Part shown: positions 2,404 to 35,070 of the stretch, piece after piece | Numbering within the stretch: position 1 is the first letter of the stretch | How the letters are laid out: every line of letters begins with the position of its first letter | Notes under the pieces: generated by a model | What the model was told of the DNA's origin: nothing | What the model saw: only the letters and a program-made list of their open reading frames with translations | Databases searched by the model: none | NCBI GenBank assembly: GCA_965644265.1 | Contig: OZ286470.1 | Location: 9,920,001-9,984,000 of the forward strand | Direction of reading: 5' to 3' | Length of the DNA stretch: 64,000 nucleotides | DNA from: Glycera tridactyla | Taxonomy: Eukaryota | Made by a program: the position numbers and the translations under genes

Positions 2404-4324
2404 GTAAGTGTCCTATCATCTTGCCTTGAACACCGTTAGTACTAATTTTCAGAAACCAGGAGTTGCCTGTATATCATACTGGGAACTTTCCCCCCCCCCC
2501 CTTCCCCGCACACAGACACAAACACATTGAGAAATCAATAGGCCTATGACACCTGAGCTTATTGGAAAAGCAGTTCATCCATGATCTGCCAATTTTTGTT
2601 TGCTGAGTCTTGATATCGATTTCAATTAACAAGTTCACAACTGTTCATAATCATCCTTTTCAAACAATTACTGTGTGATGATGACAAACAATTTGTCAGT
2701 CGAAAAACAATGTATGAGAAAGGTAATAAGTGTCAAACTTCAAACTTGTGTCGTTAGGCAGTACTTTTGACGAGGACATCAAATATTGTCTCAGGGAGCT
2801 AATGAAGCATATACTCTGACCATAATATACTGACCCCTAGAGTTTGAATATCTACTTTCATTTAGGATCTATCAATAGGAAAGAAAGTATGAACACAAAA
2901 TTATAATTTGCTGTGAATGGTAATTTCCAATACCACCTATATTTCGTGATACAGCTTAAGTAACATTGGAGGGTTTAATTCAGGGAATTCAGGGCTCCAC
3001 GTTGTGAGCCACAGGTAACCAATCACAAGTGCATATGAAGGATGCTAGTGAAGAAATATTTTGGTTGCAAGCTTGTGAATACCAATCAAATTACAGACAA
3101 TTGCGATTGATTTCACAATAAACTAATGAATACCATGATGCGAACATATATTTCTCCTGGTGACCACCCTCTTGTCTCCTCAGAAAATGAACCATGTTCC
3201 CTTAGAAATTGCAGCGCATGAGCATGATATAGTTGTAGTGAATATGGAGCATGAGAAACCGGGATGCCTTAATGGCATGATCTAAAGATAGCTGTTCTCT
3301 GCATGAATTATGCAAATGAGGGTGTTTCCGTCTGAATCCATGCTGAATAATTGTGCCACGCATCTCTATTAGGTGTTTATTAGGCAAACTGTAATGATCT
3401 ACCATCGATTTGATGCGAGATCACATTGTATCATGAAACTAGGAATGTATGCCGAAAAGAAGGATGCCTGGTAGCTCACATCTCCTCTGCTAGTGAGTGT
3501 GAGAGAAATCAATTTGAATTTCCACATTCATTCAGTCCACCAGCTGCTCACTGTGTCGAAATGGGGATATCTTACTCTCAAAACCCAATCAATAAAAATG
3601 TAATTTCACTCATAAATCACTGAATCATACAATCATTTATGCCTCCCATGATTGAAATGCTTCAATGTATATCTAATGAACCATAAGTTCAAAATGAACA
3701 GAAAAAGGTAGAGACTATTCATATCATTAGCGATGTCAACCTGATGGCAAGCCAAAATCAATCATGAGCTGGCAAGAAATTTCTATAGGAAGAAACCATT
3801 TTCATGGAAGATAGACTCATAAAGAGCTATCCAAGAAATCTATGCAAAGCAGACAGGCTTTCACAACAACCATACAAGATTTCATGGAAATCCGAGCAGT
3901 TCATTCCTTTCAATCGGCAATCCCAAAAAAGTTTTAGAATTTGTTCCATTTTTTGTCATCTAAACTGCAGTCTCAAACAAGAGTGATAAGAGGAAAGATG
4001 CCTGCCTGAAAGCACAACTAAGTTATGGTGGAGAGCTTGAATGAAGGCATTTTGACAAATTTTAAACAGATATGTTAGTATTCAATATAGTAGACCATAA
4101 TGCAGTGACACAGAGGTCTATTTGTGGCTCACAGCAAGGACCGCATCCTGAGATTCCTAAAGGAAGGATGGTCACTAGCCATCTGATCCATGGTGTATTC
4201 ACATTGACAGCAGCCGAGGTGGGGACAATGTGTTGGTGGTGGTGGTGATGGTTGAATTATATGGACTAGGCCTGTGGGGCTGAAATGGTCAGCAGCAAGA
4301 GTGTGAACATTTGAGTGTGTAAGT

Positions 4325-4450: not shown

Positions 4451-5918
4451 CTGTTTGTTGGGACTCCTAAAATCCGGGTAGGGACTCCTAAGTTGGAGAC
4501 CCTTCGAGTCCTTGGGGCTCTCAAATATTAGGCTAAAACATCTCAGCAGAACACAAACCAGGCTATATTCGGATACAATTTAAGATGTGATGAATGCATT
4601 TTGGCCAGAGCTGACTTGGCTACGAAATCATGAAAATTATCACCTCCAAGCTACCAAAGAAAAAAGAAGTGGCTAACAAAAAAGTAGCTTCCGTTTTTTT
4701 TCTAACCTAGAGCCCGGGGAATGGATGAAAATCGCTCAGATCATCTACATTCGAGGCACTATCTCATAAAACTGAAAACGATACTAGATATTATGTGTGA
4801 GCATTGGCTAATGGTCAAAATGAGAAAATAAATCATGAATGATACAGTTCGAGCAAACACAGCAAATCCAGAGAATCAGAGCTGCTGTCTCGGATTTCAG
4901 TCAAAAACTTCAGAGAGTGTGTCAATTTGACACATGACAGGATGCTTGTATCATCATTTGCTGCCAGCCTGTCCAGAATGCTATTAGAAATTGATGGAGC
5001 AAGGAAACAACTTTGCGCTCATGTGCAGTATCATATTCCAGTCAAAAAACAACTTCTATTAACAAATTATCAGACTTAGATTTGAATTGGTTGCAGCAGT
5101 GATATCTCACCTCCAATCCATGCCCCATGGTGCAAACAATGTCGTAACACACAGATACAACTTGCAGTGCCACACTGACATGAGACTTATGGTAGAATGC
5201 ATCCAGGAGCTAGCCATTGTCCAGTGTCCCATGGTTACCATCTTGGCTCCATTGAGATGGTCATGCAATGGTCATGAATGAGGTCATTCAAGACTACCCT
5301 TTCTTGGTTGCCAAGATAATGTGAACATATATAAAACTGACAGATGGTTGCTACATCTTGTTGGCAGCATGTTGTGTATTGAGATGCCCATCTAATGAGG
5401 ATGGGTGAAATTATTCATGACTACTACTTGCAGGGTCCACACTGAAGTTGAACTTTCATGAAATGCACACTCTCAAACTGTCATTTGTGACTGGACTCAT
5501 TGCTGTATTGCTACTGAGTCATTCGACTTTGGGAAGAGTACGAGGTAGTTGGTTGGTTGGTTGGTTCTGGTTTAGCGTCACGTCAGCACCATCTGGGCAT
5601 TATTGTGATACCCATGCAATAGGCATGGGTGGGACCTTCCAAGACTTCTTCTGGGTCCCCAATGGAAGATGAAATGATATGAAAATCAAAGACACACAAG
5701 GTGCCATCTGAGAGTATGACGTAAAGATATCCATCGGCTCATGTGTGTAAGACATGTATCATAGTCATGTGGGAGAGATGATGGATGATAGGAAGTTGGG
5801 GCCATTCTGCTCAGTCATATACTTCACTGGCTATGGTGCATCACCACAAGTTGATCAACATGGATGATATCTTACTTTGTGATATGCTCATTTAATATTC
5901 CAGCTGTATGTTCCTCAG

Positions 5919-6093
5919 CATATCACATCAACAATGGAGCTGATGTTATTTGGATACATATTGGAACCAACAACCTACCGGCTATTCTTCCCAATAAATT
6001 CGAGGATACTGCATGGGAACACATCCAGCTGGCGCAAGCACTTCACCAGAAGTACAATAGAATGGTCATCATTGGCGAGGTACTTGGAAGAAG
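5919..6093 (+). CDS. Host gene exon, SGNH block III: AYHINNGADVIWIHIGTNNLPAILPNKFEDTAWEHIQLAQALHQKYNRMVIIGEVLGR
   Basis: ttcctcag acceptor and AG|GTAAAT donor. IHIGTNN matches the G-x-N block III. Phase 1 start joins the previous exon (G+CA=Ala); ends in phase 2. Confidence 0.8.
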
Positions 6094-9000
6094 GTAAATT
6101 AGGATCTGTCTGCACTTTATGTTTTTTAAATGTACGAAGTTGTTCCTATTCAATGTAAGTTTATATATGTAGAAGATGAACATGGTAGGTAATGGTGCAT
6201 TGGATAAATGACTATATCAGATATAGTGAGAACATATTAGCCCATGCATTGGATGAATCCTATGATTTATACAGCAGCAAATAGGATTAATCTCTAATAT
6301 GCAGGCCTTGTCCAGCAATCATAGGGCTCCCAATATTGTCAAGCTGGTTTGCAGTTGACATTCTACAAATGAAGACGTTATTGAGGTATCTCTATAGTGT
6401 GTTGCATTTCCTCCCCAGCTTTGTTCGAGAGCATCACAATTAGCTACAAGTGTCAGCTTCGAGCTAGTATTATAACGTCATATGCCATCATTGTATTTAC
6501 AGGTCAATGATGAGTGTGTACTGATAGCTTGTTTCACAACATTTCAAGTTTCTCATCATATAATGTTTGTAGTTTATGAGAGTGATGCCATCAAAGGGCA
6601 GATCACACATCGTGCAAAGACCAAAAACACAACGGTGCTTTATCACACGATCTGATAATGCTGTTCAACCTCCATCAATTATTCTGACTTCAGAGACTGT
6701 TATGAGGTGTCGGCCAAGTTGTATAACTCACACCTACGGAAACTACACAAGATGGTTGCAGATCCAGAACAGATTCGCTTGGTCAGTTATGTTGCATTTG
6801 AACAGCCATGGTCAGACAGACTGCTTTCGTGAGTATTTCTCTCTATACATATGAGGAATTTGATTGTTTGCTTTTTAAGGGCTCTAGTAAGAAAGCTTGC
6901 CCTACTGGCATATGCTCAGGCAAGTGATTTTGCCCATACTCGATGGTTAAATCTTCAGTCCTCACCCACCAGGAAATCCACCTCACCTGGTTCAAACACA
7001 AAGTACCACCTGCTCTCTTAGATTGGCTCTACTGATGAGTGATAAGTATGATAATGGGAATTTAATATTGCTGTTTGCCTGATGCTCTATTGGTGCTTTG
7101 ACCAGAATACAACTTTCATGGGTTACTCAAGCAGTGAAAAGGTTTGGCACAAAACACAATGGTATTTCACATTTTATGTAGGACAAACATGATTGTAAAA
7201 ATTGTCTCAAGTTGGCAGCATGTGGATGAATGGATGTCTTTCCTGCACCCTTTCCAAAAGCATTCATATTGGGCCCATCTGTCAGCTTACAAGTGATATG
7301 GATATACCTGTATAGATTGATTGATTCATTGCTATTTCTTCATCTGTGTTTGTCTATAAATATACATACAATATATATAGTACATGGGAGAGTTTCTAGG
7401 TAGATAAACCAATGTCATTACTGCTTTGTATTTAATATGAAATTGATTTTCAACTAAAATAAATGATAGGTCAAACATATGAATGATTGAGAATGTGAAT
7501 TTGATGATATGTCAGCAAAAGATGAGTGATCATATAATATCGAAAAAATAATGACATATGATGTGCGAAATGGGTAGGTGATTGTTTGAGAAAATGAAAT
7601 AAGAACAATGAGGTATAACCACATTTATTGGACTTGGTCTTTGCTAAATATTCATATATATGTCCCTTGTTGATTAGAAGGGTCCAAGCACCATCATGAA
7701 ATCCATGGAAAGAGTGATCATTAAAGCATAAATACATGCATTTCTGTTGACAGCAAGGCCGATCAGTTGCATCCTTCTAGGCACGGCAATGAAGTTCTTC
7801 ATTCATTCATAGCCAAAGTCATAGAACATGAGATGGGGAGAAATTTCGAACTTGAACAAGCTGCATGGCATCAGTGAGTAGATCATAATGCTGATTTGTA
7901 GGCCAAATGCTCATATGCTGAGTAACTGACTTCAGGTGTTGAAATTGGTAACCAATATCACCAGTATTCATAGTGGATTGCATGAAAATTGATCTCTCCA
8001 AATCAAATCACTCACCAGATGATTCAGTATTGAACATATTGCAAAGAATCAGAAGATGCTTGTGAAATGCTGTGAAAAAACCATTGACAGTCCAAATGTG
8101 AGCATTTGGTCGAAGAGGACAGCTTTTTTGCAGTCTGTATGGTCCCTTGCGATTTATCTGCCAAAATGCAATTTCAGGAAAGGTCCCGTCGAACATTAAT
8201 CATGACCCAGGCTTCTGTTCCAGTTCATCGCATCATGACCACTCAACCATCCAACAATTCACATATCTACCCACTAATTCATCCATTCATTGTATCGTAT
8301 TTATTTGCTGAAGAAATGTGATCATGTACATGTTTAGGTAAGATACACCAAATCAAAATCGCATGCCAGTTTTGCAGAGGAGTGAGGAGGAATGACTCAG
8401 TTGTTGACACTTCTGCATGATTGTACATAAAGAAAGTATCATTGCATGATCAAGTCAAGTAGAACAGGGATATTGAATCTTTGTGAAAATCACTTCAAAG
8501 CTGTCCATTGTTATTGACATTGCATTAATAGCAACAGTGCCAAATAAACAGACAAACAGCATTTCAATGTAGCTAGCTTCTTACAGACCAGACCAGTAGT
8601 TGACTTGAGGTAGGCTTTCGCCCCCCCCCCCCTTCCATTACCAAAGTGGGAGGCTGAGGCCTTGATATTTATAAACAATCAATCAATGAACCTGATCAGA
8701 GTTGTCTTGTAGGTCCATCAAGACCAAGGTCCATTATACACTTTTACTTGCATTTTAGAATGTATATCTGTATGGTGTAGTGGTAGCGTATCAATACTTG
8801 ACCCGAATGTGAAACAGCTATGGCTGCAGCTAGTCATGGGATGGACAACCACAGCTGGGTTGTGAGAATGCCTCACCAGTGTGGGTGAACCATACACTAC
8901 CCTAATAGTCACAGACCACTAGAGTAGTCTCAGCCCTCAGTGTTGTATTCTGAACACAGGCATGAGCCACATCCCACCAGGGTTGGGGGATGGTGTGAGT

Positions 9001-25049: not shown

Positions 25050-25753
25050 TAATTATGCTATTGAACAAGTAAGAATAATTTCAATTTTTTTTAAGTATTA
25101 GTTGGTGAGAAGACACTGTATCTGTTGCTGTGATAGTTCCACGTATCCGCTGCTGTGAACAAGAAATTACTTTCTTACTTGTTCAAGTTGACTTTTGGTT
25201 TTCCCAGATATATTTTATCTTGATGTCTAGCGAAAGATCACGAGATGCTACCCTCGTTCCACAATAGGTCTCAATATTTTGGGGGTTCATCATCTTGGAG
25301 AAACTTGCAGCTTTGCAAAAGGAGATGTTGCTCGTGTCTTTTATCAACTGTAATTCCTCATGGAGGGCTTCCATCCTATATAATCTGGGTTTCATTAATA
25401 AAACATTGAGGACATCATGTTGTACCCTATGGAGGGCAGCAGCGTCTTTCTGATTCATTCCTAAATATATGTGACATCACAGTAATCTATGATGGGTAAT
25501 ACTAAGCTTCAAAAGAGCATCATGGCTTTGTCTTTATTCGAGACAGATCTCAATCTACTTAAGAACTTCACTCTATCGCCAGCTTTTGTTCTAGTATATG
25601 AGACATGCTCATGCTCTACCAACTGTGAAACTTCCAGGTCTTTCAAGTTGTTTACAATTTCAATGTCTTCATTTTTCAATTGTACTTCAACATTTGTGCA
25701 TTTTGCAATCCTATCCTTATAGAGAGCCTATCTGCAGCCAACACTCTAGTTGA
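25050..25753 (-). pseudogene. Older antisense LINE, 3' half (split by the 9-kb element)
   Basis: Minus strand reads LAADRLSI...IEIVNNLKDL...KFLSRLR...SLVLPIIDYCDVTY...LHRVQ, typical of the post-RT ORF2 region. The distal boundary is approximate. Confidence 0.7.
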
Positions 25754-25862
25754 GATGAGATGATGGCCGAAGCACACTGATGTGCGGATAATCCGGGGAG
25801 AGCATTTTGTCATTTTCTACTTGGTTCGATCGCATCGATCAGCAGCTTTCCAGCACGAGAGC

Positions 25863-28800
25863 ATGGATAAAGGTTCTAAGAAGGGTGGGAGAAGAAAGTT
25901 GAATCGTGGAAGCCTCTTCAACACGCTAGGAATCCGATCGTTTTTTGCTAACTTGGGGAAGTCTGAGACGGGCAATATTGGGTTTGTTTACCCCGTCTCC
26001 AACGCTACAACGACAGCTTCCGCTACCGCTACCGGCACACCCGTGCTTTTCACCCCACCGGGCACCCGCAACAGAGTTACCCCCGACATGGTCTCAGTCA
26101 AGCCAGGTACGAGTGCTCAATCCTCGCACACGCCTTCACGCGTAGGCTCGTCTGCCCCATCTGCTCAGGGAAGTCCTGCAAACTTTGCTGACAAATGTCC
26201 CGCTAACAGTAATATTGTGATCAACAAATCGGCGCTTCTTGCATTACGAGTAGATGTTCCTGAGTCAATATCAAGCTGTGCAAATTTAAGTAGTGACGCC
26301 CACCCTCCCTTACCGAACATCTGCAAAAATGATGCTACGACGCTGTTACCGGAAGATGTTCGGCAGTTATCCCAACTGAGATGTTTGAAAAGTGATGATC
26401 CAAAATTATTATCTTCACCCAGTGTTATTGTTAAAAAGTTGGATTTTGATAGCCTACCAATTCCGTGCTCGAACACTGATGAGGGCATCAAGAGTGATGC
26501 CAGGCATAATACAACTGTTCCCCCAGTTATTACCTTTCTACAGGAGTCTGTGTTAAATGACAACCAGCCGTTTCACTTCGAAGCCACGAGTTCCCAATAT
26601 GCAAGTGGTGATCTGTCTGGCTACGCCTCTGATAGCAGTGTACTAATCATTGACACCCCTCAGCGCCGCCGGAAAACGTGGAAATCGTCACCATGTTTGA
26701 CTGACGATATGTATGATCCCTATGACAAATTGCTTCGCCCAATCACTACGGTTTCTCTGACTCGGACACAATCTGATTATTTCACAACTGAATCATTGCC
26801 AACCCCAGAACGCAAACGTGCCAGAGGTTCCCCTGACTTTGGAAGCGAGTCAAGGAGCCCAAAACGCCTAAACCGCGACAAAGCCACGCCCCCTCTGACA
26901 CAATCTAGTTCAGATCTCTCAAATGGTACATTGGTCACGGTTGAGTCACCTCTAGTTCCCCTCGACGGGGTCAACAAGCAAGCTCGGAATGAATCAGCGG
27001 TAGACTGTAATGAACTCAAGGCTGTAAATGACACGGGTATCCCCCATAATGACTCGTCCCCCGACAACACTGACCCTTCGGTCAGCACCGGAAGCCCGCC
27101 AGATGACGCCAATAACATGTCTGTCGATGAACCGATCAATCCGCTATCGCCGACAGACCTGTCTAATCATTCCGCCCCACCAGTGTCGACATCTCCGAAT
27201 CTATTACAGTCTGGTTCTAGGTGTCCAACACAAAATGAAGTTCCTACCCTAACAAATTCTGTACAGCAGCAACAGGAGCAGCAACCTTCGAAGCTGCTGA
27301 CAAGCGTGTCCACTCAAGCAGATCTAACTGACTCAATATCTGACTCAGTCCTACGTGCATTAAAAGTTGATATGCGACGTGAACTCCAAGACTCTTTGTA
27401 TGCCGTAATCAAGTCAGAAACTTCATCAGTCGAAAACCGGATTAAATCAGACACTCGTCGTGAATTCGAGAAATTTGTCATCAACACAGTCAAGGCAGAG
27501 TTTGCAACATCAGAAACCCGCATCAAAGACTCTGCCCGCCGTGAAGCACAAGAGTCTCTGTTTGGTGTTATTAAATCAGAAACCCTCATGGCAGAAGGTC
27601 GCATAAAGGAAAACCTACTCACCGAAGCAACCAAGGACATAGCTCGAATTGAACACCAGTTAGTGCAACTTCAGAGGGAAGTCAAATCTCTTCTGACCAC
27701 GCCGAAATATACGCCACCCCCCCAACCTCAGCAACCTGACAAAAGCTACCCTGAAGGCGAAGCTTCCCCGTTGGATCCGACGGTCAAAGAGAACAACAAC
27801 AGTCTCGAGGTCTCATTCCATAATTTTGTGACAAAAACTGAGAAGAGACTTGAAAAGACAGATTCACGTTTAGATGGTTTAGAGATGTCTGACAGAATGG
27901 ACTGTCTGATTGTGGAAGGGGCCGATATAGATCCTCACTTCTCAATTACCGAAAATATATTATATGCATTGAATGGCAGATGTGGGTTTAATCTGACCAA
28001 TTCTGATGTTATCAAATGTTCCTTTGTCGGAAGACATGGTCGCAACAAGCGTCCTGTGTTGATAAAATTCAAGGATGTAGATGTGAAAAGAGCAATCATG
28101 AAGAAAAAAGGCACTTTTATTGGCTCTAAGATATTTGTTAAAGAATATCTGATTTCAAACCAGACATCCCTATTTTATCAGGCACGGGAAGCTAAGCGCA
28201 GTGGCATTTTTGTCAAGGTATGGACTCATGATGGGGTGATTTGGGGTACCAGAAGTCATGTCAGTCTTCCCGAGGTAATCACAACTGATTTACTTGAGAC
28301 ATACCGCAAACAGTCACACAGTGAACACAAACAGCCTGACACAAGCAATAATGTGTCATCGGAACATACACCCAATACCAGAGTAGAACCACTCACCACG
28401 GCTGCTGCGCAGCCACCGGGTCAACATCAAACACCCGCCCTCGCACAGCAACCACCACCCTCAAGCGACACTCAATCATCAATACATCATCACAATCACA
28501 ACCAGAACCTAGGATACCAGCATGCTCACAACCTCACTCATGGGAACCATCAGGGATCATTTCAATGGAATCATCAATACAATCTGAATCAAGCCAGCCA
28601 TCTGAGACCGAATGCCCTACCCTTCTATCCACATCAGCCCCCGCCTTTACAGACCCACTCCTTCAGTCAGCTGAGACCACCTTTCTGGCAGTATAGCAAT
28701 AACCAACAATATAATCCAAACAATTACCAGCAACAGTTTCGATCTGTACATACCCAGCACATCAATGGCGCTTACCAACCTCATCAGCAACCACTCATGA

Positions 28801-28871
28801 ACAATCTGACGAATAACTATACAAACAGTCCTGCTGTCAATTCATGGAATGATAGTAATAATCAATCTTGA
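25863..28871 (+). CDS. LINE ORF1 protein (~1002 aa from first ATG): long disordered N-terminus, coiled coil, L1-ORF1-like RRM/CTD, Q/N/H-rich tail
   Basis: DRMDCLIVEG...RPVLIKFKD...KIFVKEYL...LFYQARE.K......VWT.DG.IW is the RRM+CTD pattern of L1/CR1-type ORF1p. The frame is uninterrupted (open from 25782). Confidence 0.8.
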   Translation: MDKGSKKGGRRKLNRGSLFNTLGIRSFFANLGKSETGNIGFVYPVSNATTTASATATGTPVLFTPPGTRNRVTPDMVSVKPGTSAQSSHTPSRVGSSAPSAQGSPANFADKCPANSNIVINKSALLALRVDVPESISSCANLSSDAHPPLPNICKNDATTLLPEDVRQLSQLRCLKSDDPKLLSSPSVIVKKLDFDSLPIPCSNTDEGIKSDARHNTTVPPVITFLQESVLNDNQPFHFEATSSQYASGDLSGYASDSSVLIIDTPQRRRKTWKSSPCLTDDMYDPYDKLLRPITTVSLTRTQSDYFTTESLPTPERKRARGSPDFGSESRSPKRLNRDKATPPLTQSSSDLSNGTLVTVESPLVPLDGVNKQARNESAVDCNELKAVNDTGIPHNDSSPDNTDPSVSTGSPPDDANNMSVDEPINPLSPTDLSNHSAPPVSTSPNLLQSGSRCPTQNEVPTLTNSVQQQQEQQPSKLLTSVSTQADLTDSISDSVLRALKVDMRRELQDSLYAVIKSETSSVENRIKSDTRREFEKFVINTVKAEFATSETRIKDSARREAQESLFGVIKSETLMAEGRIKENLLTEATKDIARIEHQLVQLQREVKSLLTTPKYTPPPQPQQPDKSYPEGEASPLDPTVKENNNSLEVSFHNFVTKTEKRLEKTDSRLDGLEMSDRMDCLIVEGADIDPHFSITENILYALNGRCGFNLTNSDVIKCSFVGRHGRNKRPVLIKFKDVDVKRAIMKKKGTFIGSKIFVKEYLISNQTSLFYQAREAKRSGIFVKVWTHDGVIWGTRSHVSLPEVITTDLLETYRKQSHSEHKQPDTSNNVSSEHTPNTRVEPLTTAAAQPPGQHQTPALAQQPPPSSDTQSSIHHHNHNQNLGYQHAHNLTHGNHQGSFQWNHQYNLNQASHLRPNALPFYPHQPPPLQTHSFSQLRPPFWQYSNNQQYNPNNYQQQFRSVHTQHINGAYQPHQQPLMNNLTNNYTNSPAVNSWNDSNNQS

Positions 28872-31409
28872 AATAGACTGTTCTAAGCACTGCCAACGTA
28901 AAGACACCTACGTCTCAGCTACATTCACCTTGAATGACCCCACCACTTCAAACAACACCACGATATCTAAACACATGCAGGCACCCCAACACAACCTTGA
29001 CCAGAAATCGACACATGTACATTGCACACGCCAATAGCTCAACGCTGTCTTATTTCTGTATATGTCAATATCACGGATCATGGTAACCATTTTAAAAATG
29101 CTTATATGGGCGCAGAATGTTGGCATTTGAATTCGACATGAACCCTCTTTTGGCCATAGGTTTATTTGAATATCATGCAAATTGTCGTGTGATTACATGA
29201 ATTCCCGCTTTTTCAGTTACACTTTTCCTGCCCGCTGCTTTTCATGGTTGTCATAACTGCTCAAGTGTGACAGGCCTGCGTGCCTTAATCACCCGCCGCA
29301 GACGTGTTTGACTTGACTGAGTTGTTGTTTTCTATCCTGTGTTTTGCACTAGTTTGTAATTTCTCGGGTTTCTGTTATAAGGAACATATAGACATCAGTG
29401 CATATCCAAGTAACTTAATATGACTCGAAATTGTTTATTTCAGTGTACCTATGACTCATCGACTATGAATGATTTCTCGAATCAGAGTGTGTATGTCCAT
29501 GGGGTGAGAGCGCCCAGACTTTTCTCTCAGCTGTTTCTCTATCTTCCATCTCCTCTCCTCTTTCACCGCATGATGATCTCACAACTCTGGTGGGAGCTCC
29601 CAAGCTTCTCACACCTATTTCTCTAATCTTGTCTCCTCTCTTCTTTCTCTGCATGATGATTTCATAACCATCTGCGTAGATAGAAACTATATTTTGCAAT
29701 ACGCATACACCTTTCTCACCAGGACAAATTATCAAGTTGAATTATCAGGATAGACGTGGTTAGTTATTATTAGACCCGGGTTAGCAACACGTCATGCAAC
29801 TTCGTAGGCGGTTCCAGATCCTACTTAGGCAAAGAAAGCAATATATGTGTAAATGGGGACCTCATCTCTGAAAGACTGACGGATTGCAGGGTGCCCATAT
29901 GTAAACAATATGGTTGCTTCGATATGATTTATATATATATTTTTGACACGATGTATATAGTTTGAATGATTTATTACTTATCTTAGTAGAATGACTGATT
30001 GAATCTTGACTCACTGAACATTTTCTTAATGTCCGTATGTTAACTGTATGATCACTTTGACTCGACTTATATAATTTCAACAACGTTTATATTGTTTTAT
30101 TGTACGATTGATTGAACCTCATGAGAGTATGCATGTGTGTGTGCCTCTGGTTTGGTCCTTTTACATGACTCATGCTCTACTATAGCGACTACTTGAATGT
30201 ACGTGATTATTCACAGCGTTCACCAGCCCTAACCTACTGCATATCACACGGTTCCAGAATAAGAACCTGGCCTCTATCGGGGGTGAAATTATACTGCAGA
30301 CGTGGGATTGTGGACCTTCATTGGATGTCATATCACGTCATTAGGATATTTTTGTACCAATTTTGTGCATGCTTTTATGTTGCTGCCGATAAAATTGTTG
30401 CATACCTGCTGTCTCTTTTGTCGGTCATTGGATCTATCCCGAAACCTGTAACGCCCATTCTGCTTAAATGTATATGCATATGTTCTTGTTGCAAATGTTA
30501 GTTGATTGGTAATAGTACCCGATTTGATCAAACTATTTGTTTGAGGACCCAACCTTAGGCCATCGCGCATTCTTTTACGGTGATTGTATATGGCCAGTTA
30601 CCCTATCTTCTTTGTCAGGAATACTCACGGCATTTCTTCTCATCCCAAATGACGATTGACGAATACGAACTATAGCTTGAAACCATCCCCGATAAGCTGT
30701 ATGTAAACACCACGTCAAAGGTGCATATGTCTCATGATCAGGTCTAAGTGAGAGTATTTGCAGTACATTATCTTATCCATCTATCATTTAGGGATCAGCC
30801 CAATTGCAGCAGATCTCTCATTTTTGCTACTGCGTATAGTCTAGCCTCCCTTAACGGTGACAGCATGTAACCAGTCTCGAGATACCTATATGAGGATCTC
30901 CTCGTATATTTCATCCATTCTCGCTATGACGGCCGTAAACTAGGAGCCATGTGTGAGAAAGCTCCGACAGACATATATGTATACAAATACGAAAGTGCTG
31001 TATGATATCCCATTTGCTCTACAAAACTACTGCATCAAGGTTGACAATAGCGCGTGGACATCCCACGCCTGAGGATGAAACACACCACCTACTGGATTTA
31101 CTCTGAATCTTTATTGCAACCAACAATCGCTATAATCATATCAATCACTGTGTATTTCTCCACCTTTTGAATGCCCATATGTTAACTAACATCATGCTGT
31201 CGTTTGAACCCTTTTAAACCCACACTTCGAAGCATACGGGATGTGAACCATCCTAATAAGTCTACATGTGTTTTATTTGTTGTCTTGCCCTCTCATATTG
31301 TATGTTATTAATCGAATTGGTAGGACAAAGTGGGAATGTCTCTTTATAAGCTCTCCCCAGAACCTCACTTACCGATCATCCACTTCATAATACTCATTTC
31401 ATCCAAACC

Positions 31410-34384
31410 ATGGCACCTAGGAAGGACAAGTTCGTCTTTCCGCTTGCAAGCTGTTTTGATGATAAGGACTATTGTTCGATGTCCTTATCAAACTTGCCAG
31501 GTATAGCAAATGCCTGTCTCAACATCCAAAGTTTGACACGTAAGATAGATGATGTTTCGAGCCTTCTAGCTTGCAGCAAAGTTGACATTTTATGCATCTG
31601 TGAAACATTCTTGAATTCATCCGTGAGTGACGAAGAACTTCATATCCCAGGATATTGTTTTCTCAGGTTCGACCGCACATCTGAGAGTGGCAAACTGTGT
31701 GGTGGAGGTCTTGGTGTGTATTACCAATCGCAATATGATATAGTTGTCAATGAAGACCTATGTAAATGTACCCCTGACATAGAAATCATGAGCTTCACTC
31801 TCAACCTGTATAGAGCCCGTCCAACCCACTACTTTTTAGTCTACAGGCCCCCAGATGGGTGTGTCACCAATGGGTTATCACTACTAGAATCTCTTATGTT
31901 AGACCCCTCCCTGAAGCTCCCGGCTGACGTCATCTTGCTTGGTGACACCAACATTTACACCCTCAAACCGGAGTGTCACAAGTCGAAATCTTATGCACTC
32001 TTTTGTGAAAAAGTAGGTGTCACTCATCTGATTGGTAGTCCGACACGAATACATCAAAATGGTGCAACATGTATTGACCATCTTGCAGTGAGCAGGCCCG
32101 AGTACTACTGGCGCTCAGGGATATTAGACCCATGTCTTAGCGACCATCACCTCATCTTCGTGGCTCGCAATCGTCAAAAACTCTCATCTGTCAAACATGA
32201 AATATCTTATAGATCATTTAAGAATTTAATGCCTGTACTTTTACTGACGAACTTGCGTCATCTGACTGGAGTCCTGTTTTTGGAAGTAGTGACGTCGAGA
32301 TAGCTGCCACTAATTTCACTACCACTTTCGTGAGTCTCATGAACAAAAATGCTCCTAAGAAAAACCTGCTGGCAAAAAGTGATCACCAGCCATGGGTGAC
32401 ACCTGAATATGTAGCAGCGATCGCATACTGTGAATCCAGATCAAAACGCAATAACGAACACCCGACTGACTACAACCGCGCTATGAAACGTGAATCCTTT
32501 CGCATCAAAACGAGGATGAAGAAACGCTTGAAACGCTCGTACATTTCTAATTGCTTACAAGATGCTGGAAATGATAGTAAGAAACTATGGAAGGAGATCA
32601 AGAGATTTTGGCCCTTAACACAGAAAGCACCAGTTACACCAAGCAGCGATAGTGATGACCAAGAGTCAATCCCGATTGAAGAGCAGGTCAATGAATATTT
32701 CACCAGCGTGGGTGCCCGACTGGCAGAGCAAATAAGTGCAGCGGGCGAGACTGACTTCCGTGAGCGAGATAATCGTACTAGACGTAATAATATTGATATC
32801 TCTCCGTCCTTCTCCCTAGTAGAAGTCTCACCCTCTGACGTCAGTGATTTCATTCTTGAGCTGAGCAACTCCTCTGCCTCAGGCATGGATGAAATCACAA
32901 GTTTCTTCCTGAAGATATCCTCTCAGGTGATTAGCCCCATATTAGCACACGTCTTTAATCTATCGCTCAGGCAAAATATCTTCCCAGCCAACTGGAAGGA
33001 AGCTGTAGTCACTATAATACACAAAGGTGGATCTTCAAAGGACTTTGGTAATTTTCGTCCGATTTCCCTATTGCCTGTCCTTGGGAAGCTCCTGGAGAAA
33101 ATTGTCCACGCTCAAATTACAAAATTTGTAAATGCACACGACATCCTTAACTCGGCTCAATTTGGGTTCAGGAAGGGGTTCTCCACTGGGTCGTGCCTCG
33201 TCAGCCTTCTGGATAAGATTTACCAGGGGGCTGACGAGGGTCGCCTCGCTGGAGTCCTCTTCCTGGACCTGAAAAAAGCCTTCGACACTGTCGATCACAA
33301 GCTTTTGATATCTGAACTTGAACACCTTGGCTTCAGTGACTCTTCTCTCTCATGGTTTATCTCATACCTCACCGACAGATCCCAAGCGACCAAGATAGGC
33401 AATTCAATCTCCACGCAGCTTCCGATTAAATATGGCGTACCCCAGGGGTCTATTCTTGGACCCCTCCTTTTTATACTCTATGTCAATGGTCTGAGTAACT
33501 GCCTGGAACACAGCTTCCCTTTCCTATATGCCGACGACACAGCACTACTTGTACTTGGTAAAAACTCTGATGAGGTTGAGGCAAAGTTAAACCTTGACCT
33601 AGCCCTGATCTCGGATTGGTTCAAAAGTAGAAGACTGACGTTAAATCTATGCAAATCGAATGTCATGGTATTTGGAACTGACCAGCGTCTCCGTAGATGC
33701 AGACAACTTGATATTAAATATAATGGCCAATCAGTTCATCAAGTTGACTGCTACAAATATCTGGGCATCCAACTAGATCCTGTTCTGTCTTTTAAGAACC
33801 ATGTTGATTATCTCGTGAAAAAAGTGAATTTTAGAAGGCGAGCGCTGTATTACCTCCGCCCCTCTATCAGCAGAGAAACTGCCCTTTTTCTGTACAATAA
33901 CCTCATTGACCCACTGTATACCTACAATGATTATGTGTATGATGCATGCTCGGAGACTCTAAGCAGTCGGCTCCAAGTGTCGCAGAACCGCTGCCTGAGT
34001 GTCGTTTGCGAGCAGGGGTGGGTTTACTCTGCCAGTGATTTACATTCGACACTTGGAACCGCCTATCTGAAAGAAACCCGTCGCTCGAATACCATCCTTG
34101 AGGTGTATCGTACTATGCATAATGCCAATGTACCCACATCTATTCTATTCTCATTAACAACACCGAGAGAAGAAGGTCCTGCCACCAGAGCTAACAGCCT
34201 GGTAAAGCAAAATAATATGTTGGACAAACCTTTCACACATCTCAAGTTTAGCGACGGGAATCTTCGGATCAGAGGTGCCAAGTACTGGAACTCGTCCAGT
34301 ACAGATATCAGAACATGTGACAGTCTGTCTGGCCTCAAACGTCTGTTGAAATCTTGCCAGCCCCAAACTCGACCAAACGCATGA
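31410..34384 (+). CDS. LINE ORF2 (APE endonuclease + reverse transcriptase), single -1 frameshift at ~32225-32227; ~991 aa if restored
   Basis: LNIQSL, ICETFL, YRPP, LLGDTN, SPTR, IDH, SDH (APE). FPANWK, FRPISLL, QFGFR, FLDLKKAFDTVDH, VPQGSILGP, YADD, KYLG (RT). Adding one T gives YRSFKNFNACTFTDELASSDWSPVF. Strong Kozak AACCATGG. Confidence 0.9.
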
Positions 34385-34631
34385 GTTTCTCCCTGTGAGA
34401 TATCAGTCACTGGATTTACCTAACTGTAGTTATTCATCACGTAGTGCTGTTCCAACAGCTTATCATAATCTACTATCTGATACGCAACAATATCTTGTAC
34501 ATAAATGTATTATTGATCTACCATGTACTGATGCTACTTTTATGCCTGGACTTATACTATGTACTTGTCAATATTGAATTTCAATGTAATTCCAGCATTT
34601 ATTCCGAGTACCTATGTCTTCTTGTATTTCG

Positions 34632-34728
34632 TTGCATAAGCACCTAATATGACCCATCTGGGTCAAGTGTAAAACTGTACTTCACTTCTTATGCAATAAA
34701 CATTTTCTGATTCTGATTCTGATTCTGA
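34632..34728 (+). promoter_or_regulatory. LINE 3'-terminal stem-loop, poly(A) signal and microsatellite tail
   Basis: GCATAAG/CTTATGC outer stem enclosing TGACCC/GGGTCA and AAGTG/CACTT hairpins, followed by AATAAA and (TTCTGA)4. Confidence 0.6.
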
Positions 34729-34730
34729 TG

Positions 34731-35070
34731 GATACTATCATGTCATCCTAATTTTTTCAAGTGATTCAACTGTTGGACTGTTGGATTGTGAATGCTATAT
34801 CATCGGCATATGAATTTAATGTCATGTTATTTAGATAATTTGGCATGTCATTGACATATTTGGTGAAAAGGAGTGGACCTAAAATTGATCCATGTGACAC
34901 TACTCTTGACGGTCTGGTGACTTGACAGGGCTCCTGAAATGATTTTATATGGCCATTTCAAGATGGAGAAGAGGAAGAAATGGCCGAGGATAATCCGCAA
35001 ATCAGTCATAACCCTGTGAATCAAATATCTATTCCCAGAGAATTTTGGGATATATTGTCCTATCAATCAA
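34731..35070 (-). pseudogene. Older antisense LINE, RT core (5' half of the split element)
   Basis: Minus strand reads VSHGSILGPLLFTKYVNDMPNYL...SYADDIAF...DDMIVS and continues in frame into 25751 when the insertion is removed. Confidence 0.75.

Follow-up and report, generated by a model that had tools for sequence, protein, structure and literature searches.

How the second open reading frame (ORF) of a long interspersed nuclear element (LINE) comes to be translated from a bicistronic RNA is treated in reviews as an open question (PMC3894237, PMC5381506), and it is raised with some force by an element in a 64,000-nucleotide stretch of the genome of Glycera tridactyla (GenBank assembly GCA_965644265.1, contig OZ286470.1, positions 9,920,001 to 9,984,000 of the forward strand; hereafter the window, with positions counted from its first letter). 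Positions 25751-34729 on the + strand of the window represent a single LINE copy of 8979 nt, belonging to a young family and inserted in an older antisense reverse transcriptase (RT), in which a long non-coding spacer separates ORF1 from ORF2. Comparison of this copy with its relatives establishes that the element inherits an ORF1-ORF2 spacer of 2.5-3.3 kb as one of its own parts throughout the clade, and that the spacer sequence itself is almost unconstrained. It also reveals a short upstream ORF (uORF) and a pair of complementary 9-mers, which are newly reported here. Judging by these comparisons, conserved elements appear to be confined to the two ends of the region that would have to be bypassed, with the uORF and one 9-mer in the untranslated region at the 5' end (5'UTR), and the complementary 9-mer just before ORF2. 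We tentatively favor the reading in which a uORF-dependent ribosome shunt allows the full-length bicistronic RNA to be used for translation of ORF2, while giving it somewhat less than an even chance. The features of the element on which the argument turns are the following:

25763..25780, + strand: uORF of 5 codons and a TGA; ATG flanked by A(-3) and G(+4), stop 14 nt before the 5' motif
25795..25803, + strand: 5'UTR motif GGGGAGAGC, 59 nt upstream of the ORF1 ATG
25863..28871, + strand: ORF1, 1002 aa from its ATG (studied by AlphaFold model, Foldseek and Ka/Ks)
28872..31409, + strand: non-coding spacer of 2538 nt, T-rich, G-poor and fast-evolving
31350..31358, + strand: pre-ORF2 motif GCTCTCCCC, identical to the reverse complement of the 5'UTR motif
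31359..31409, + strand: leader of 51 nt from the motif to the ORF2 ATG, 3.9% G and free of ATG
31410..34384, + strand: ORF2, with its ATG at 31410, encoding an APE endonuclease and an RT (Pfam)
34631..34697, + strand: 3' structure, a 10-bp stem (34631-34640/34688-34697) around a hairpin (34651-34664), from a 9-copy alignment
34705..34729, + strand: (TTCTGA)4 microsatellite tail, the same tail being present in all subfamilies

Does the spacer belong to the element at all? A search of the whole genome (2.04 Gb, 207 contigs) recovered two other copies that span the full length of the window copy, at 99.5% and 98.1% identity, along with 5'-truncated copies that begin in ORF1, the spacer or ORF2. 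The starts of these copies fall at element positions 1, 1653, 1752, 2523, 4036, 5481, 6813, 7223 and so on, and all of them end at the tail; a shared 3' end combined with variable 5' truncation is typical of LINEs. The spacer is present in all 8 of the sister copies that reach the region (93-100% identity), and when used alone as a query against the genome it matched only copies of its own family (9 candidates). The first-pass annotation of this DNA had measured the spacer at 2538 nt, had seen in it no insert, tail or recognizable ORF, and had concluded that ORF1, spacer and ORF2 arrived as one unit. These claims are borne out: the spacer contains no tandem or inverted repeats, no ORF above 110 aa and no Pfam or Rfam match, every sister copy that reaches the region carries it, and it occurs nowhere else, so that the three parts both arrived and propagate together. 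Comparison of genomic copies, which had been set beforehand as the test, uncovered no sister that lacks the spacer. An origin of the spacer as a known nested element or a secondary insertion was rejected, its matches being confined to copies of its own family. One sister copy (L007, G000 C40:37521034-37525208 with L017) shows an internal deletion of element positions 5916-7950, which lies within ORF2.

The long-spacer layout extends well beyond this family. Related subfamilies share 72-76% nucleotide identity with the window element in ORF2 and 56-58% amino-acid identity in ORF1, and their homology to it ends sharply at the ORF2 ATG. When the upstream DNA of five subfamilies was inspected, in three of the five a long gap was seen to separate ORF2 from ORF1, or from the 3' part of ORF1, upstream of it. 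The spacers of four subfamilies, including that of the window, measure 2538 (window), 3047 (L034), 3274 (L037) and 2853 nt (L035), and neither blastn nor tblastx aligned any of them with another, save for one marginal tblastx hit. Between subfamilies synonymous sites are saturated (pS, the proportion of synonymous differences, ~0.7), and the Ka/Ks values of 0.14-0.19 for ORF1 and 0.04-0.055 for ORF2 place both frames under purifying selection; intact ORFs were found in several subfamilies. The layout has therefore long been carried by active lineages. Given this retention, and the 66 sense ATGs that the window spacer presents within 2.5 kb, the earlier deduction that ORF2 must be reached by some route other than the standard one is sound. 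Two truncated LINE copies are also preceded by long ORFs on the reverse strand (511-1062 aa; L035:4184-5716 and L038:1743-7749 in coordinates of the + strand), which probably belong to other transposable elements.

Four further families were reached by pairing, by hand and from their coordinates, the genome matches of the ORF1 domain with those of the ORF2 start. In about 40 copies the match to the ORF1 RNA recognition motif (RRM)/C-terminal domain lies 2.6-3.8 kb from the start of ORF2, the gap being 3311-3368, 3527-3551 or 3807 nt in the '70% group', 3528-3781 nt in the '73% group', mostly 2901-2916 nt in the '65% group' and 2599-2616 nt in the '58% group'. Since ORF1 continues for 530-560 nt past the domain match in the three subfamilies in which this tail was measured directly, the spacers of these families should, by their coordinates, be about 2.1-3.3 kb long. 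Candidate loci in the genome number at least 4133 for the L1-like ORF1 domain, most of them within open frames of ~900-1060 aa, and at least 12606 for the N-terminus of ORF2.

The sole positionally conserved word common to the four spacers is GCTCTCCC(C), located 60-94 nt from their 3' ends. In six subfamilies GCTCTCCCC ends 51-126 nt upstream of the ORF2 ATG, and at least 10 families, whose leaders cannot be aligned, have it before ORF2. Each locus has a single occurrence, one copy carrying a G-to-C change and two others a CpG-type C-to-T change. Its exact reverse complement, GGGGAGAGC, stands upstream of ORF1 in each of the three 5'UTRs examined, 59-60 nt from the ATG, and a second, distal copy of GGGGAGAGC, which the window copy has lost by truncation, is found 108-137 nt before that ATG. 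This element accounts for both of the occurrences of the 9-mer in the 64-kb window, against an expectation of 0.21. Searches of the genome with degenerate patterns returned 72+33+5 matches to GCTCTCCCC-N(45-137)-ATGNCNCCNMG versus 1+1+0 for the control, which for the pre-ORF2 patterns was the reversed pattern; these matches include the '70%', '73%' and '65%' groups as well as several new families, and their leaders are mutually unalignable. The pattern GGGGAGAGC-N(45-75)-ATGGAYAA had 120 matches versus 4 for its control, and the distance from GGGGAGAGC to the ORF1 ATG is nearly always 57-60 nt across dozens of families with very different intervening sequence. Both 9-mers occur in the same element, ~5-5.6 kb apart, in at least five families, and the energy of the duplex that they can form is -18.2 kcal/mol. 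Prediction of a long duplex between the 5'UTR and the pre-ORF2 region was uninformative. Downstream of the pre-ORF2 motif the leader contains 4-12% G versus 15-21% upstream of it in 8/8 representatives of the closer subfamilies.

The second conserved feature of the 5'UTR is the uORF. In all three 5'UTRs examined the two 5' motifs flank an ATGGC that has A at -3 and G at +4 and opens a frame of exactly five codons followed by a stop. The pattern ATGGC-N(20-34)-GGGGAGAGC-N(50-65)-ATGGAYAA, which imposes no stop codon, had 57 matches in the genome versus 0 for the control, and the printed matches were read by hand. An in-frame stop is present in all of the ~24 distinct sequence types, being codon 5 in 3, codon 6 in 20 and codon 7 in 1, and it is TGA in 14, TAA in 6 and TAG in 4, with TGG never seen. 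The uORF ends 11-17 nt upstream of the 5' motif, or 23 nt in one family, and the peptide after Met-Ala is not conserved. At random, an in-frame stop would be expected in that interval in only about one-third of sequences; the length of the uORF and the position of its stop are therefore under selection, and the peptide itself is not.

These features may be united in the following scheme, under which scanning ribosomes would translate the five-codon uORF in the 5'UTR and terminate 11-17 nt before GGGGAGAGC. The latter would be paired with GCUCUCCCC at the end of the spacer, across ~5-6.5 kb, in a helix of 9 bp and about -18 kcal/mol. A part of the post-termination 40S subunits would then be carried over the helix onto the leader, at 51-126 nt from the ORF2 AUG, and the remaining 40S subunits would reinitiate at the ORF1 AUG ~80 nt downstream, the outcome being plentiful ORF1 protein and little ORF2 protein. 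The length and sequence of the bypassed spacer would be irrelevant to translation of ORF2, which would explain its free drift. The arrangement includes one of the features of such a shunt, a short 5' uORF with a properly placed stop just upstream of the base of the putative helix, and in plant pararetroviruses the configuration is a short uORF that ends before a stable helix, followed by an unstructured landing site (PMC5902531). Duck hepatitis B virus (DHBV) uses shunting across its core ORF to gain access to Pol (PMC5902531). We found no paper linking ribosome shunting or uORFs to translation of LINE ORF2, as far as titles and abstracts go. The more general proposition, that a whole animal LINE clade uses a virus-like, uORF-dependent shunt across a 9-bp long-range helix to pass ORF1 and a multi-kb spacer, is more doubtful than the mechanism by itself.

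What the spacer sequence itself looks like constrains any explanation. Among sister copies its divergence compared with that of the ORFs is 5.4-5.6% versus 3.1-3.3%, 2.4% versus 1.25%, and 16.5% versus 8.5%; it thus diverges about 1.7-2 times faster, and it gains indels as well. No conserved island was detected within it among sister copies, an Rfam scan of it returned no match, and 300-nt spacer windows compared with dinucleotide shuffles showed no excess folding (z -1.44 to +0.39, mean -0.32). Twenty ORF pieces from four spacers yielded no coding signal and no Pfam match, and the window spacer has neither internal repeats nor a CpG island. The visible conservation of the end of the 3'UTR serves as a positive control, and functional non-coding parts are therefore detectable in these comparisons; the bulk of the spacer is not conserved. 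The proposal of the first-pass annotation that it might be a structured or cargo RNA is not supported, given its fast divergence, the lack of a conserved island, the mean z of -0.32 and the lack of coding signal. Splicing, which had also been put forward as a route to ORF2, is likewise not supported: neither spacer-less nor spliced copies were seen, and there are no conserved splice sites, including no conserved acceptor after the pre-ORF2 motif. A hidden or decayed gene in the spacer, including an esterase, was discarded for this family, as there was no more than a single marginal tblastx hit between the four spacers and no Pfam match in the 20 ORF pieces. Matches to the SGNH-esterase domain (PF13472) number at least 2387 candidates in the genome, some within frames of ~1000-1180 aa and others stand-alone with 250-330 aa. 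The spacer of the L018/L034 subfamily contains a 178-nt x 3.5 tandem array (L034:7485-8126), and overlapping matches in several copies suggest that its copy number is variable.

Several points weigh against the shunt. The helix has only 9 bp, and with both arms invariant it offers neither a family-specific extension nor covariation; in a local fold the probability that the 5' motif is unpaired is only 0.22; the 5'UTR contains two copies of the motif, and pairing requires no second copy; and the leader of the '70% group' is not G-poor by eye and includes several small uORFs. Cauliflower mosaic virus (CaMV) bypasses a leader of roughly 0.5 kb, and the 5-6.5 kb proposed here is far longer. Finally, the GGGGAGAGC...AAGATGGCC module presumably resembles the 5' end of human L1 with its YY1 site, which suggests a role in a promoter. 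The main rival builds on such a role: GGGGAGAGC would be a transcription-factor or core-promoter site, its inverted copy at the end of the spacer would give rise to a monocistronic ORF2 mRNA with a short leader, and the spacer would provide promoter or insulator space. We consider this internal promoter possible, though on the unlikely side. It would fit the two copies of the motif in the 5'UTR beside a AAGATGGCC-like box, a combination that we take to be akin to the human L1 5' end and its YY1 site, and also the 178-nt tandem array of one subfamily, which is reminiscent of promoter monomers. It could further draw on two independent copies, L021 and L026, with starts at -525 and -531 relative to the ORF2 ATG (a difference of 6 nt), which may mark a discrete internal RNA 5' end. 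These starts (L021:980 and L026:966-972; G000 C39:9163143 and C1:21019218) belong to copies of the L023 subfamily that have unrelated upstream flanks, no other copy of this subfamily being truncated in the spacer. Other spacer-truncated copies start at scattered sites, and no spacer-less copy was seen among the ~30 copies. However, a start at the motif or immediately downstream of it is seen in none of these ~30, and there is no pile-up of ORF2-only copies, even though a subgenomic RNA would carry the same recognized 3' stem-loop. Nor is there a CpG island or any other conserved promoter element near ORF2, and an internal promoter leaves unexplained both the strict inverted orientation of the motif and the conserved stop of the uORF.

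The remaining readings are all improbable in our estimation. In one of them the inverted 9-mer acts as an antisense promoter, much like that of L1, with its transcript reading back across both the spacer and ORF1, and ORF2 is expressed by other means. On the antisense strand the motif indeed reads exactly as it does in the 5' promoter region, but no YY1-like box follows this copy, the spacers contain no conserved antisense ORF or sequence, and it is hard to explain why many families should retain a feature that invites silencing; we have little expectation that this is the answer. Equally slight is the chance we allow to a stand-alone internal ribosome entry site (IRES), in which the last ~100-150 nt of the spacer, comprising the pyrimidine 9-mer and the unstructured leader, would recruit ribosomes with no pairing to the 5'UTR. 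A conserved pyrimidine-rich 9-mer followed by a G-poor leader directly before ORF2 is what might be expected of such a site, and IRESs have been predicted or proposed for the long intergenic regions of vertebrate L1 (PMC5381506). Yet there is no conserved or unusually stable structure here (z -1.44 to +0.39, no Rfam match, no conserved island), and both the exact complementarity to the 5'UTR and the uORF ahead of the motif would be left as coincidences. The spacer might also be tolerated junk, such as the remnant of a lost third gene, for instance an esterase, or an old nested insert, with the two 9-mers having unrelated roles. Its evolution like neutral DNA and the abundance of esterase matches in the genome are in keeping with this, whereas the four spacers contain no esterase or other coding remnant, the spacer is not an independent repeat, and all families retain it at 2-3.3 kb even though synonymous sites are saturated and 5' truncation makes upstream sequence costly; we regard this, too, as very unlikely.

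The locus itself is occupied by an APE-type LINE that was active recently, has two ORFs and carries a 3' stem-loop and a microsatellite tail. Its nesting in an antisense RT, from which the first-pass annotation had derived its ends, is upheld, and the ends themselves are not: those given, 25754-34730, are 1-3 nt off and their literal join is out of frame, in-frame rejoining of the host RT requiring ends at 25751 and 34729. In minus-strand translation the right flank ends with ...YADDIAFT...DDMIVS and the left flank begins with TRVLAADRLSI. The distance from YADD to RLSI/RLTL is 30 residues in the flanking RT versus 31 in the element's own ORF2, and the flanks are therefore adjacent halves of one decayed antisense RT:

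34730..35060, - strand: host RT, N-terminal part (...SILGPLLF...YADD...DDMIVS), decayed and interrupted, from flank translation
25480..25750, - strand: host RT, continuation (TRVLAADRLSI...), from flank translation

The 5' junction of the element shows a microhomology of 3-5 nt (gttga), and no target-site duplication is evident at the window copy, nor is there a clear one at L021 or L026. The window copy is slightly 5'-truncated, as sister copies L031 and L032 reach at least 111 nt further in the 5' direction. In the longest sister copy the 5' region amounts to ~600 nt ahead of ORF1 (L031:9466-9961), and it shares 80% identity over 215 nt with that of a diverged subfamily (L037:2743-2957).

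ORF1 consists of a low-complexity N-terminal half, a coiled coil, an RRM-like domain, a C-terminal domain and a Q/N/H-rich tail. Its AlphaFold model, with a pLDDT of only 66, comprises a long helix, a beta-alpha-beta RRM-like domain and an alpha plus beta-hairpin unit. When this model was compared with the PDB by means of Foldseek, the top 10 matches were all to the human L1 ORF1p trimer (2YKP, 2YKO, 2YKQ), with probabilities of 0.98-1.00 and E-values of 1.9e-4 to 4.2e-3. The modeled combination of coiled coil, RRM and C-terminal domain thus points to an L1-type ORF1p, that is, type II in the scheme of Khazina and Weichenrieder. The RRM region is more than 90% identical between subfamilies, and a profile search with ORF1 recovered 460 relatives. 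ORF1 has no Pfam match, exact-protein look-ups with ORF1 and ORF2 found no match, and neither did a word-based protein search with ORF1. In a feature search of a protein atlas, ORF1 residues 640-820 (27780-28322) came nearest to the Baculo_FP/Baculo_FP_2nd clusters (score 0.90); Pfam gave no confirmation, and the likeness of the RRM/C-terminal region to baculovirus FP was set aside.

ORF2 matches PF03372 (E 6.8e-9) and PF00078 (RVT_1; E 1.5e-34) in Pfam. The window copy of this frame is split by one frameshift near 32222-32303, which is missing from sister copies L031, L032 and L006, where an intact frame of 991 codons is seen. The database proteins nearest to ORF2 are unnamed and at most 40% identical to it. 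The closest foreign relatives of ORF1 and ORF2 (L039, L040, L042 and L043), with up to 40% identity in ORF2, lie on short, eukaryote-like contigs from one metagenome sample (ENA ERZ23486739); the exact 9-mer is missing from the 5' regions of these relatives, the examined contigs being 1.5-4 kb and thus too short to show the layout. Beyond ORF2 there is a 3'UTR of 320 nt, after which the (TTCTGA)4 tail follows. Subfamilies agree at 83-88% identity over the final ~110 nt of the 3'UTR, and in 9 aligned copies from 6 subfamilies there is an invariant 10-bp stem around a 5-bp hairpin, GACCC-N4-GGGTC. This stem never varies, and hence shows no covariation; it is probably the structure recognized by the RT.

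Among known systems, the vertebrate L1 elements with long intergenic regions (those of fish, frog, lizard clade 2 and afrotherians) share with these elements the presence of two ORFs, an ORF1p of the coiled coil-RRM-C-terminal domain type, and a non-coding intergenic region that is variable and unalignable between families. Published L1 intergenic regions are 26-1032 bp in length (PMC5381506), and a review puts those of non-LTR elements at 'hundreds of bases' at most (PMC3894237). The elements described here differ in having a spacer of 2.5-3.3 kb, a microsatellite tail and 3' stem-loop instead of poly(A), and an ORF2 of 991 aa. Membership of the L1 clade was in fact rejected on account of the hexamer tail, the 3' stem-loop, the length of ORF2 (991 versus ~1275 aa) and an RT equidistant from L1 and R2, its scores against L1 ORF2p and R2 being equal (~1e-16). 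With the CR1/L2-type 'stringent' LINEs they have in common the 3' stem-loop and (TTCTGA)n tail, an APE and an RT in an ORF2 of ~1000 aa, and frequent 5' truncation. Judged by its 3' stem-loop and tail rather than by RT phylogeny, the element behaves like one of these, but it differs from them in its L1-like ORF1 of ~1000 aa, which is kilobases away from ORF2 and does not overlap or adjoin it. The 5' end presumably also has a counterpart in human L1, which we take to possess a G-rich 9-10-mer followed by a AAGATGGCC-like box in its 5'UTR; here, by contrast, ATGGC opens a five-codon uORF, the G-rich motif is duplicated around this uORF, and an inverted copy stands before ORF2.

Mammalian models have almost no spacer to study, and this clade constitutes a natural system whose gap ribosomes could not plausibly cross by scanning or reinitiation. 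The comparative data also leave three short, mutable features as candidate cis elements, namely the five-codon uORF and the two complementary 9-mers. It is with the plant pararetroviruses, CaMV as well as rice tungro bacilliform virus, that these features agree in their arrangement, as in those viruses a 5' uORF ends before one arm of a helix, the other arm of which precedes the landing sequence and the start codon (PMC5902531). With DHBV they share the circumstance that a reverse-transcriptase ORF would be reached by shunting over a long upstream ORF. The stem would differ from the compact leader hairpin of the pararetroviruses in being a single 9-bp long-range helix that encloses a 3-kb ORF and a spacer of 2.5-3.3 kb. 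If the shunt is the true route to ORF2, it would represent a convergence between retrotransposons and pararetroviruses.

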